Part shown: positions 57,193-61,705 of the stretch, one piece after another
How positions within the stretch are numbered: the stretch's first letter is position 1
Layout: each line of letters starts with the position of its first letter
Assembly: GCA_020536535.1 (NCBI GenBank)
Contig: JAHLWZ010000183.1
Location: 1 to 64,000 of the forward strand
Reading direction: 5' to 3'
DNA from: Pelomyxa schiedti
Lineage: Eukaryota > Protista > Evosea
DNA: 64,000 nt
Notes under the pieces: model-generated
The model's input: only the letters and a program-made list of their open reading frames with translations
Databases searched by the model: none
What the model was told of the DNA's origin: nothing
Translations under genes and position numbers: made by a program

Positions 57193-57292
57193 NNNNNNNN
57201 NNNNNNNNNNNNNNNNNNNNNNNNNNNNNNNNNNNNNNNNNNNNNNNNNNNNNNNNNNNNNNNNNNNNNNNNNNNNNNNNNNNNNNNNNNNN
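57193..57292. other. Scaffold gap (100 N)
   Basis: Run of 100 N. Confidence 1.
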
Positions 57293-58589: not shown

Positions 58590-60752
58590 TTAAGTTCGGA
58601 ATGTGGTGATCCCAGCTTCCATCTTGGGCCTAAGATGCTTTGGAGGGGCGGCAGCGACGACGTTTGGAAAGTCTTCCCTTCGGAGAAGCCAGGTGATTAC
58701 GGCCTGTGAGCCCCAGAAGCCATCCTCATGACCAGGAATTCTCATGCCAAGGGTGCAACACACAACACCACCAACAACCGCTGTTCTGTCCCATTCCACC
58801 TCGTGGAGGTTGTTGGTGCTGTTGTTGAGGTTGCTTTGGGTGTTATTTCCTATGGCTGTGGGGACCACCTGAGATGCTGTGGGGGGTGCTGGAGATACGA
58901 CGAGATTGTAGACGTAGTCTCCCATAATGTGGTCCGCCGTGCGGGGCTCGCCTAGAACAGAGGGCAGGCACCATGTGTTGTTGTGCCATACGGGGTGGTC
59001 TGTGGTTATTTCCAGAACAGAGGCAGGGTTCCCGGATCCAATTGTTGTTACGATCTCTATTGGTTTCCCAACAGGGCATCTGTGTGAAAAATAAAAACAT
59101 ACTTCAAACTAGATGGAGGAAATCCGTACTTCCAAATACAGATCACAGTAGCAGGTTTAGTGTGCGTTGGGTCACCGTTGATTGCAGTTGCAATGAGATC
59201 ACCTACTTGTAGCTTTTTCAGAAGAATTTCCGTGCCGTTAGCCATCAATATTGTGGAATTTGGACCAAAGCAAACATATTCTTCATCCTGGGGTTTGTTA
59301 GAAAAAAAAAATACGCGCTGGTGCACACCCTCCTCCATCTTCTTGATGATGAACTTACAATAACCCACTCAGAGAAGCACTTCTCGGGATCCCACAAGAA
59401 GCTTGGATTCTTCCAACTCAAGCCATTTATTATACCAGGGTATGTCCATCTCGTGTTGTAGAGTGTATTAGTCCAAAGTGGTTCTGTTTTGGCAAAGTGA
59501 TAGAACTGCCGACATGTACGGGAAACAGCTATCAGGGAGGGGAAGTCAAGATAGCCGAGAATTCCTGGGCAAGTTAACTGATCAGTGTCCAAGCTTACTT
59601 GGATTTCAGAGTCGTATTAAAACTTACCAAGCCAGATATCGCGTGGGAAGAAACTAATTGAAGCTTGAGCAACACCCTCACTGGGTATTTGAATAGTAGA
59701 ACATTTGCTGACACTGTGAGCTTATTAAAGTGTGAATATGATCAAAGAGTTCTGTTCACACCTTACAGATGTAGTACTTTTTGGATTTGGAGTACTTTTC
59801 GAGAAGAAGCTGAAAAAGCTTTTCTTTGGTTTTTCCTCATAGCCAAAGCTTCCAGCTCTACATAGAGCCTCACATAGTTCATTTAATCCTCTCTTTAGTT
59901 TGGAACTTATTGTTGAACCACATCAGTGAGATTAATCTGAGTGGTCCTACCTGCACAGAAAGTAACCATAGGCCTGAATTTTTATTGCCGCAGTGATACC
60001 ATCCTGCAAGATGTCCTAGTCGAAGGTTAGAAAAACTGCTGGACTAGGGAAAAATATGGCAAACAGGGTAAAGGGCTTCTGAAACAAGGTCCATTTTTAA
60101 CCCAACAAGAAAAGTCATAGTCTGCGCATCACGGTCATGAAAACGTAATACTAAAAAAAACTTACCTTAGGTTTGAGTTCCCGAAGTTGATTGTTACTTT
60201 CAGTCAATACCTCCACCAGCGAAGTCTTATCTGCAGCACAATAACATAGGACGACTATATTGGCATTGGAGAAACTGTTGAGAGTCAAAGCAAGGCACAA
60301 GTCATTGTATGCACCAAAGGTCTCTCATGGGCGTGAACTGCTCACATCCCAAACTACCAATGCATTCTATTGCGTTACTTTCACAAAAAAAAAAATAAAT
60401 AACACACTCTAAAAACTCCAATAGTGTGACAGTGTCATCCATCTCAATTTGTTTGCTCCACTTGATTGGATATTAGAAAGCAAAACAGCAGCATAGGCAC
60501 AACTGATGGTTCTATTGAGCCCTCATATACACGGTCAGAGTAGATTCCATTCACACACCTGTGCTTCCATCATTGCCCAACACCAGGAAAACATTGCCCC
60601 AAAAACCCCACAACCTAACGCAAAAACAAAAAAAAAAACCACCAAACGCACGTCTCCACAAGGGTGGTTTTCCCAACGCACGACGGGCCAAACACCATCA
60701 CTTTGCCCCTCAACCGACGCTTCGTTGTGACTGACGTGCTTCCTGACCACAT
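58590..60752 (-). CDS. Fusion protein: Ras/Rap-like GTPase + F-box + Vint-type Hint domain
   Basis: KVMVFGPSCVGKTTLV; GCEQFTPMRDL; LVGLKMDL. F-box FFPRDIWLGILGYLDFPSLIAVSRTCRQFYHFAKTEPLW. Hint CFGPNSTILMANGTEILLKKLQVGDLI...LEITTDHPVWHNNTWCLP...DYVYNLVV...VGGVVCCTLG...FWGSQAVI. Confidence 0.8.
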
Positions 60753-60927: not shown

Positions 60928-61705
60928 ATGGCGTTCAAGGTTGTGTTCATTGGGTGTTTCTAATTCTTACGGGATTTGATTTGCAGAAACTGCATGCTAT
61001 AGCGGCGGCGTTGGCGTTCCTAGCGGTTATGTGTGCTATTGTTGCTCTGTGTACTCACCATTGGATGATTCGCAAAGATGATGGGAAGTGAGTGACCGAT
61101 AAACTTGGGCATTTCCCACCTATTTTTAAACACTATGTAACTTTGAAACAGAACTTCGTACCTTGGTCTCCTCAGGGCAAAAGAATGTACCTCTGAAGGT
61201 TGCAAAAAAACGGGCTTGGGTCAGAGTGATTACTCCTCATTCAGTCACGCTGGCAAGGTGATTACTCCCCTCACTGACTTATATTTGTAGTACTATAATA
61301 GCACCAAAGTATTAACCTACAGACTGACTATATCTTATTGTTGTAATAGTTAACATGAATTTGCCGTATAATACATTAACTTGCACACACATGCAGATTG
61401 CATTCCCTTTGATTTTGGTCGGGATGGTGATCACGGCACTGGCGGCAGGCTATTACGCACTGAATTCGTTTGGATCCAGAATGACGAGCCCGGCGGCCCA
61501 TATGTGCATCAGCGCCAACGCAATTGTGGGAGCGGGCCTGGTGCTGCTCGCGTGGGTGATTTGGATTGCAGTGGTGCCACGTGGAGGCGGCTGGAGGATC
61601 GGGTTCTCGTTCTTTTTGGCAATTGCGGCCTCGGCTCTGGCGGCGGCAGCTTACGCGGCTTCGATGGTCAAGCAAAAACAGGGTGCTGCGTTGCTTGGGA
61701 GCTGA
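60928..61705 (+). CDS. Small four-transmembrane claudin/PMP22-superfamily-like protein
   Basis: TM1 AALAFLAVMCAIVALCTHHW, loop YLGLLRAKEC (GLW-C-like), and three more hydrophobic helices ending WRIGFSFFLAIAASALAAAA. Confidence 0.6.

Follow-up and report, generated by a model that had tools for sequence, protein, structure and literature searches.

To our knowledge, the Hint domains of eukaryotes occur in three settings: hedgehog/Hog proteins, inteins together with bacterial intein-like (BIL) domains, and proteins that combine a von Willebrand factor type A (VWA) domain with a Vint-type Hint domain. A gene of the anaerobic amoeba Pelomyxa schiedti, Pelo_2224, raises the question of what such a domain does at the end of a protein that begins with a small GTPase and an F-box. 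The gene lies on the minus strand (60752/60698–58590) of the first 64,000 nt of contig JAHLWZ010000183.1, the stretch that we analysed and refer to as the window, and comprises 12 exons and 11 GT-AG introns of 40–93 nt in a single frame. Its product is deposited as KAH3765918.1 ("hypothetical protein Pelo_2224 [Pelomyxa schiedti]", 512 residues; P0001 in our set). An HMMER search with the last exon (58593-59078) retrieved this protein at 100% identity across the whole exon, and while a 12-exon chain built from canonical GT..AG sites gave an open frame, the exon set of Table 1 reproduced the deposited protein residue for residue. Residue numbers throughout are those of P0001, which starts at ATG 60698.

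A Ras-like GTPase, an F-box and a Vint domain

Pfam profiles recognise three modules in the spliced protein, all above their curated cut-offs: Ras at residues 2-158 (53.9 bits, cut-off 21.6, E = 2e-14), F-box-like and F-box at residues 210-251, that is 59655-59467 (35.7 bits, cut-off 24.3, E = 7e-9, and 30.3 bits, cut-off 20.5), and Vint (PF14623) at residues 302-419 (40.8 bits, cut-off 27, E = 2.6e-10). Single exons already suffice to match F-box-like (5.7e-8) and Vint (2.5e-5). Matches of this strength lie well outside what chance would give. An initial annotation, made from the letters of the window, had proposed these modules, and its landmarks are all found where it placed them on the minus strand: the GTPase motifs GPSCVGKT, GCEQFTPMRDL and GLKMD, the F-box, and in the Hint region the Cys codon 59270-59272, CFGPNSTILMANG, ITTDHP, VYNLVV, VVCCTLG and FWGS. 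Of the VWA domain, which that annotation named as the usual predecessor of Vint, there is no sign: Pfam finds neither VWA nor Vwaint upstream of Vint, only Ras and F-box.

The first module retains an intact P-loop (GPSCVGKT, as GxxxxGK[ST]), the switch-I Ser and the Asp of G4. Two other motifs depart from the canonical form: G3 reads D-L-G-C-E-Q, one residue short of the Rap1 DTAGTEQ when aligned with Rap1b, and G4 reads L-K-M-D instead of NKxD, with Leu in place of Asn/Thr in 13 of the 13 family members and an invariant Asp. The region forms alternating strands and helices in the full-length AlphaFold model, at a predicted local distance difference test score (pLDDT) of 70-87, and it has no CAAX end. 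Judged from these motifs, the module is an atypical Ras-superfamily GTPase in which nucleotide binding is plausible and hydrolysis doubtful. Its place among the Ras, Rap and Rho subfamilies is not fixed, because the closest solved structures are Rap1b (6e-13) and then Rho proteins (6e-11), the least degenerate short paralog (P0004) ties between R-Ras, KRas and Rac at about 5e-20, and the long form P0014 matches Rac1 without ambiguity (2.5e-46). The earlier description as Rap-like therefore stands for the best pairwise match but not for the subfamily, as the long paralogs are unambiguously Rac.

The F-box (FPRDIWLG/ILGYLDFPSLIAVSRTCRQFY) aligns to that of Skp2 in the Skp1-Skp2 structures (E = 3.6e-5) and is, by sequence, canonical and Skp2-like. 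The linkers at residues 164-210 and 249-300 are predicted by AlphaFold to be disordered; despite this each contains a conserved motif, the first KKSGFFSFFSK and the second TEPLWTN..W.YPG..L.WKN.SF.WDPE.

Profile matches and the predicted fold both identify the C-terminal module as a Vint-type Hint domain starting at Cys303. Vint scores reach 54 bits in the paralogs, and a profile of 22 family members matches the crystal structure of a Tetrahymena Vint domain (8R2C) at 1.1e-15 and the HhC domain of Drosophila hedgehog at 1e-5, in the latter case with Cys1 on Cys1 and TPDHP on TPAH. The AlphaFold model of residues 255-512 has a Hint core of pLDDT above 90, for which the best Foldseek match is again 8R2C (template modelling score 0.77 by target, E = 3.5e-8), followed by the BIL domain BIL2 of Tetrahymena BUBL1 and then by hedgehog (1AT0) and numerous inteins; the matching AlphaFold DB clusters are Vint proteins, some named VWFA- or U-box domain-containing. 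Invariant in all 22 members are Cys303, Trp349, Thr375, Asp377, His378, Pro379, Trp386, Asn408, Cys457, Pro465, Trp472 and Pro488.

The Hint core is followed by a conserved C-terminal extension in which Pfam finds no further domain and no sterol-recognition region. The N-terminus of the protein is the GTPase and not a signal peptide, and the position aligned with hedgehog Asp46, the cholesterol-activating base, is Lys or Arg within a conserved CIW[KR]C. Sterol transfer of the hedgehog type is thus unsupported. Splicing as in inteins or BIL domains was rejected as well: a C-extein is missing, and beyond the Hint core the protein continues for only about 20-30 residues, without a conserved Asn-Cys/Ser/Thr junction.

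A probable self-cleaving adaptor of the ubiquitin system

By analogy with other Hint proteins, we consider it fairly probable that Pelo_2224 encodes the cytosolic pro-protein of a Skp1-Cul1-F-box (SCF) adaptor, which cuts itself between Val302 and Cys303 and thereby releases the adaptor, with hydrolysis as the default outcome. We infer self-cleavage from the invariant catalytic residues and the fold, and model its steps on hedgehog, inteins and BIL domains. Cys303, assisted by Thr375 and His378, would attack the carbonyl of Val302 in an N-S acyl shift. Resolution of the thioester would then part a GTPase and F-box fragment of ~34 kDa from the ~23 kDa Vint domain; water would be the default acceptor, transfer to another one being unlikely. 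The freed fragment would dock on Skp1/Cul1 through its F-box, and the GTPase, together with a Kelch propeller in the long paralogs, would serve as the target-binding or regulatory module.

Several observations weigh against this reading. The residue at position -1 is Val, where hedgehog has Gly, and we found no cleavage or functional data for any Vint domain in the literature, with most subscription journals outside the coverage. The F-box comes after what would be the module that binds targets, and self-cleavage would shorten what follows the F-box to only some 50 residues, an arrangement unusual among SCF adaptors. Skp1 binding is itself only predicted, and the deviant G3 and G4 motifs make nucleotide switching uncertain. 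On the RNA side, four public runs covering the Pelo_2224 locus retain the introns and contain no joints, being contigs of one genomic sample, apparently the source of the assembly, and a search for cDNA-derived protein fragments across both disputed junctions (P0001:120-330) found none. These null results do not speak against the gene model.

Two other readings of the Hint domain have to be set beside self-cleavage with hydrolysis. In the first, the thioester would be passed to another nucleophile, either a lipid or other small molecule, giving the GTPase-F-box fragment a membrane anchor at its C-terminus that replaces the lost CAAX box, or a protein lysine, in an ATP-independent conjugation. 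Both outcomes have precedents, in the transfer of hedgehog to cholesterol and in BIL2 of the Tetrahymena BUBL1 locus, which needs no ATP to join a ubiquitin-like domain to lysines, a Ras GTPase being among the proteins so modified (PMC8616854, section 2.4), and is the second-best structural match to our model. The missing CAAX end and the conserved extension beyond the Hint core would suit such a transfer, as would the second invariant Cys, Cys457, which recalls hedgehog C143, the residue that carries a branched thioester intermediate (PMC12054796). Yet the equivalence of Cys457 and C143 is one of analogy, the Lys/Arg at the Asp46 position and the lack of a sterol-recognition region or of any Pfam domain past Vint do not favour a transfer, and, with neither a C-extein nor a conserved acceptor, the sequence points to no acceptor at all. 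We regard transfer as unlikely, and the self-conjugation suggested in the initial annotation as speculative. One version of it, in which the Vint domain would be a built-in ATP-independent activating enzyme and Cys303, perhaps via Cys457, would place the whole GTPase-F-box part on a lipid or protein amine, seems to us quite unlikely; were it true, a covalent bond would hold an SCF adaptor on a membrane or on a partner, and chemistry like that of hedgehog and BUBL would extend to ubiquitin-ligase adaptors, in at least 14 differently targeted copies within one amoeba.

In the second, the Vint domain would not cleave at all and would be a C-terminal binding or regulatory module, at the place where F-box proteins usually have their substrate receptor, such as WD40, leucine-rich or Kelch repeats. 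The lack of published cleavage data for Vint fits this idea, as does the Val at -1, which may slow the acyl shift. But Cys1 and T-x-D-H-P are invariant across the Pelomyxa paralogs, whose end branches measure about 0.5 changes per site, and in the cryptophyte and environmental clade described below, an invariance that is hard to explain without catalysis, and we hold a non-cleaving domain to be improbable.

A single gene, duplicated as a unit

Self-cleavage that releases a GTPase-F-box fragment presupposes that the three modules are made as one protein. They could instead be a product of annotation, two head-to-tail genes, one for a small GTPase and one for an F-box-Vint protein, that were merged both in the initial reconstruction and by the gene predictor. 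For such a merger one can cite that RNA support was not obtained at the Pelo_2224 locus, that retention of intron 8 would end a stand-alone GTPase 18 codons further on, and that proteins with only one of the two parts, P0033 (F-box-Vint without GTPase) and P0042 (Ras-F-box without Vint), are annotated elsewhere in the genome. The locus itself leaves no room for intergenic space between the two parts. Exon 9, where the linker and the first F-box helix are encoded, contains no Met and follows two stop codons that lie in frame within the intron, so the F-box part cannot be translated alone.

Mapping of the proteins onto the DNA at four paralogous loci (P0004, P0012, P0003 and P0040) recovered the same 12-exon structure as in P0001, with intron positions common to all five loci, such as those after ..IWL in the F-box and after CIWK in the Hint domain. 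A Met is absent from exon 9 in these four paralogs too. The identical structure in five paralogs indicates that the whole unit was duplicated as one gene, in agreement with the initial claim of three modules joined in one frame.

A single annotation pipeline produced all the P. schiedti models; three further sequences are independent of it. The first is a Logan contig (L004, run SRR23919877), which carries the exons of paralog P0032 at 100% identity and lacks 12 introns of 38-59 nt, making it a spliced cDNA; it spans the Kelch repeats, the F-box and Vint through to the stop. The second, a Trinity transcript of Pelomyxa sp. JSP in EukProt, contains a complete Kelch-F-box-Vint open reading frame (ORF). 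The third is an ENA metagenome contig (L001; ERZ21831265:ctg80510l, 109,759 bp, 39% G+C), probably from a eukaryote related to Pelomyxa, which is collinear with the entire P0032 at 36-45% protein identity and thus preserves the order Rac-Kelch-F-box-Vint in another organism. One ORF of this contig runs without a break from the F-box across the linker and Cys1 into the Hint domain as far as CIWKY, and the next intron falls at the position used in Pelo_2224. Given all these lines of evidence for one gene, a merged-gene artefact is very unlikely.

A Pelomyxa family with varied front ends

Pelo_2224 is a member of a family specific to Pelomyxa, whose paralogs number at least 14 and are listed in GenBank as hypothetical proteins. 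Nine P. schiedti proteins have the order Ras-F-box-Vint (P0001, P0002, P0003, P0004, P0007, P0010, P0012, P0039 and P0040) and four the order Rac-Kelch-F-box-Vint (P0011, P0014, P0032 and P0041). The statement of the initial annotation that no protein of this architecture is described is borne out in that we found no paper describing one, but the protein is no singleton, given its deposited paralogs. A full-text literature search returned no account of a Ras-F-box-Vint architecture, the papers that combine Hint and F-box being concerned with bacterial toxin systems, and the genome paper mentions neither F-box nor GTPase, with "hint" appearing only in the title of its Augustus reference (PMC8887013). 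The Pelo_2224 sequences are thus public as hypothetical proteins, and we found no description of their architecture.

When 1.84 billion cluster representatives were searched exhaustively by HMMER with the last exon, only 31 relatives reached the threshold of E = 1e-3, none of them a VWA-Vint protein (0/31). In a maximum-likelihood tree of the Hint region the sequences formed two clades (support 100/100), one with all Pelomyxa copies and the other with the cryptophyte Rhodomonas and environmental sequences. The deep branches of the Pelomyxa clade have no resolution and its end branches measure about 0.5 changes per site, which indicates an old radiation rather than recent copying. The front ends that Pelomyxa places before Vint are varied: they comprise Ras-like plus F-box, Rac plus Kelch plus F-box, Kelch plus F-box, and F-box alone in P0033, as well as ankyrin repeats (P0017) and a domain that Pfam does not recognise (P0009 and P0013). 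The latter two share a Y.RAC..G...F region right before Cys1 with the Rhodomonas and environmental proteins P0015, P0018, P0019, P0024 and P0030, and from this distribution their type of front end is probably the ancestral partner of the Vint subfamily. Proteins of the P0009/P0013 type have some 300 N-terminal residues without Pfam recognition.

In the searches made, F-box-Vint proteins turned up only in P. schiedti, in the isolate Pelomyxa sp. JSP and in the organism behind L001. Scanned with the family alignment, JGI metagenome contigs yielded 33 pattern matches, of which not one was confirmed, and ESM Atlas returned generic Vint/Hint clusters, many of them from giant viruses, with no F-box-Vint cluster. 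A word-based homologue search with the Hint alignment added at least one further environmental protein.

Three side observations concern these relatives. The L001 gene (2350-5330) has fewer introns and is adjoined by tetratricopeptide repeat and saposin-like genes. Several large ESM Atlas clusters consist of stand-alone Vint domains of ~175 residues, labelled mostly Nucleocytoviricota (giant viruses). P0042 and P0002 have consecutive accessions (KAH3763373.1 and KAH3763372.1) on one P. schiedti contig of 40,561 bp; P0042 is a 362-aa Ras-F-box protein without Vint, and P0002 a 402-aa, N-terminally short Ras-F-box-Vint protein with no CFGP Hint start, and the two may represent a tandem pair or else models that are damaged and wrongly split.

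Comparison with known systems

Atypical Rho GTPases fused to BTB domains, of the RhoBTB and RacA type, are Cul3 adaptors, and the predicted adaptor would be their SCF counterpart. Both combine an atypical Ras-superfamily GTPase with a cullin-adaptor module, the long Pelomyxa paralogs even having a true Rac domain, whereas the adaptor module of Pelo_2224 is an F-box (Cul1/Skp1) in place of BTB (Cul3), and the Kelch and Hint parts are without counterpart.

The closest known Hint proteins are the VWA-Vwaint-Vint proteins (Bürglin 2008, PMC2362128; 8R2C), which share the Hint subtype as the C-terminal domain of an intracellular protein, with Cys1, the T-P-x-H-P motif, the YN..VL strand and the C-x-x-L-G motif. 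They differ in that Pelo_2224 has, by Pfam, a GTPase and an F-box instead of VWA and Vwaint, and in that its Vint subfamily is divergent, with none of its 31 relatives being VWA-Vint. U-box domains precede some VWA-Vint proteins (Bürglin 2008, PMC2362128), so that Vint has been linked to ubiquitin-ligase parts before. With hedgehog HhC (1AT0/6TD6), Pelo_2224 shares the Hint fold, the aligned positions of Cys1 and TxxH, the C-terminal location and the predicted departure of the upstream part as a thioester, but it differs in its missing signal peptide and sterol-recognition region, its Lys/Arg at Asp46 and its Val instead of Gly at -1. BIL2 (6Y75/6TMM; PMC8616854) is likewise a protist Hint-fold domain tied to the ubiquitin system, but lies between ubiquitin-like domains and possesses a splice junction at its C-terminus, whereas the Hint domain of Pelo_2224 ends the protein and its upstream part is an F-box adaptor, not a ubiquitin-like modifier. 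As judged from these comparisons, Pelo_2224 has a Hint domain of the Vint family and is neither a protein of VWA-Vint architecture nor a Hog protein nor an intein.

In this family F-box proteins have acquired a Vint domain, whose catalytic residues stayed invariant throughout a large radiation that is confined to one lineage and that brought forth diverse front ends. This is natural evidence that Vint is useful to ubiquitin-ligase adaptors. The GTPase-BTB adaptors also gain a probable Cul1-type counterpart, and the family offers small soluble constructs with which Vint autoprocessing and the fate of the thioester can be tested in E. coli. The family is relevant to the fields of Hint domains and cullin adaptors, within a narrow taxonomic range.

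Start codon and splice junctions

The deposited model and the initial reconstruction of the gene differ at three places, each of which keeps the frame. For the GTPase-to-F-box junction, the in-frame join that had been proposed is supported, but its acceptor is probably 33 nt away, at 59713 rather than 59680, so that the linker is 11 residues longer. The phase-0 GTAAGT intron before the Hint domain (EWVI/DEEYV) was similarly sound as a frame-keeping junction but probably not in its position: the donor had been set between 59359 and 59358, and in the deposited model it lies 30 nt further on, between 59329 and 59328 (GTGTGC), so that VSSSSRRWRR precedes DEEYV/C. We favour the two deposited junctions, because a comparable stretch, rich in Ser and Arg and then acidic (SSS-RR-S-D-D/E), precedes the Cys in paralogs P0010, P0012 and P0007, and because the resulting introns of 48 and 41 nt, as opposed to 81 and 71 nt, match the typical size in this gene. 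The stretch before the Cys, residues 288-302 (59358-59273), resembles a kinase consensus (e.g., RRxSxSD[DE]xV). It could gate cleavage or serve as a degron.

At the start codon the preference is reversed. The deposited ATG 60698 (MVFGPS...) leaves just three residues ahead of the P-loop glycine, and the upstream in-frame ATG 60752 chosen in the initial reconstruction adds MWSGSTSVTTKRRLRGKV and thereby completes the first beta-strand (RGKVMVFG, against KVSVMG / HIKVSVMGSGGVGKT in P0004). Because it restores a normal first GTPase strand as in P0004, ATG 60752 is probably the true start.

Gene structure and neighbourhood

The positions of the exons and of the features that they encode are given in Table 1. 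The gene is no pseudogene, as its frame is intact, its splice sites are canonical throughout and all family-invariant residues are present. Its intron content fits the figures for the P. schiedti genome as a whole, with 7.4 introns per gene of which 98.4% are GT-AG (PMC8887013); the gene models of that genome are Augustus predictions refined by PASA/EVM and single-cell transcriptomes (PMC8887013).

Table 1. Exons of the Pelo_2224 gene and the features they encode (positions in the window).
Feature	Position	Strand	Content
Whole gene (coding sequence)	58590..60752	-	Deposited start 60698; upstream in-frame ATG 60752; stop TAA 58592-58590
Exon 1	60652..60698	-	To 60752 if the upstream ATG is used; P-loop GPSCVGKT
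Exon 2	60504..60558	-	Switch I region (YEGSIEPS)
Exon 3	60408..60460	-	KQIEMDDTVTLLEFL
Exon 4	60315..60353	-	Degenerate G3/switch II, D-LGCEQFTPMRDL; one residue shorter than Rap1 DTAGTEQF in the Rap1b alignment
Exon 5	60166..60274	-	NIVVLCYCAADKTSL...
Exon 6	60065..60121	-	G4, LVGLKMDL (Asn to Leu, Asp retained)
Exon 7	59951..60015	-	AYGYFLC; G5 region begins
Exon 8	59762..59905	-	Final GTPase helix and conserved linker motif PKKSFFSFFSK; Pfam Ras match ends at 59857
Exon 9	59628..59713	-	Linker and beginning of F-box (FPRDIWLG); no Met, two in-frame stops just upstream in the intron
Exon 10	59329..59564	-	Remaining F-box, conserved TEPLWTN..WKNPSF.WDPE linker, SSSSRRWRR stretch
Exon 11	59130..59287	-	Predicted scissile Val302/Cys303 (Cys codon TGC 59272-59270); Hint motif A CFGPNSTILMANG..VGD..CIWK
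Exon 12	58590..59079	-	Hint motif B ITTDHP (T375 59006-59004, H378 58997-58995); VYNLVV; low-complexity insert; Cys457 in CCTLG (58760-58758); FWGS; DFPNV tail; stop

Pfam has no match for two neighbouring ORFs, a 116-residue hydrophobic one at 61355-61705 on the plus strand and one of 350 residues at 58489-57437 on the minus strand. The latter is the next gene on the same strand and has a Thr/Ser/Pro-rich tail. Gaps of 100 N in the assembly lie at 733-832 and 57193-57292, the second within ORFs just downstream of the Pelo_2224 gene. Gene spacing around Pelo_2224 is very tight, the start of the 350-residue ORF lying only about 100 nt past the Pelo_2224 stop.

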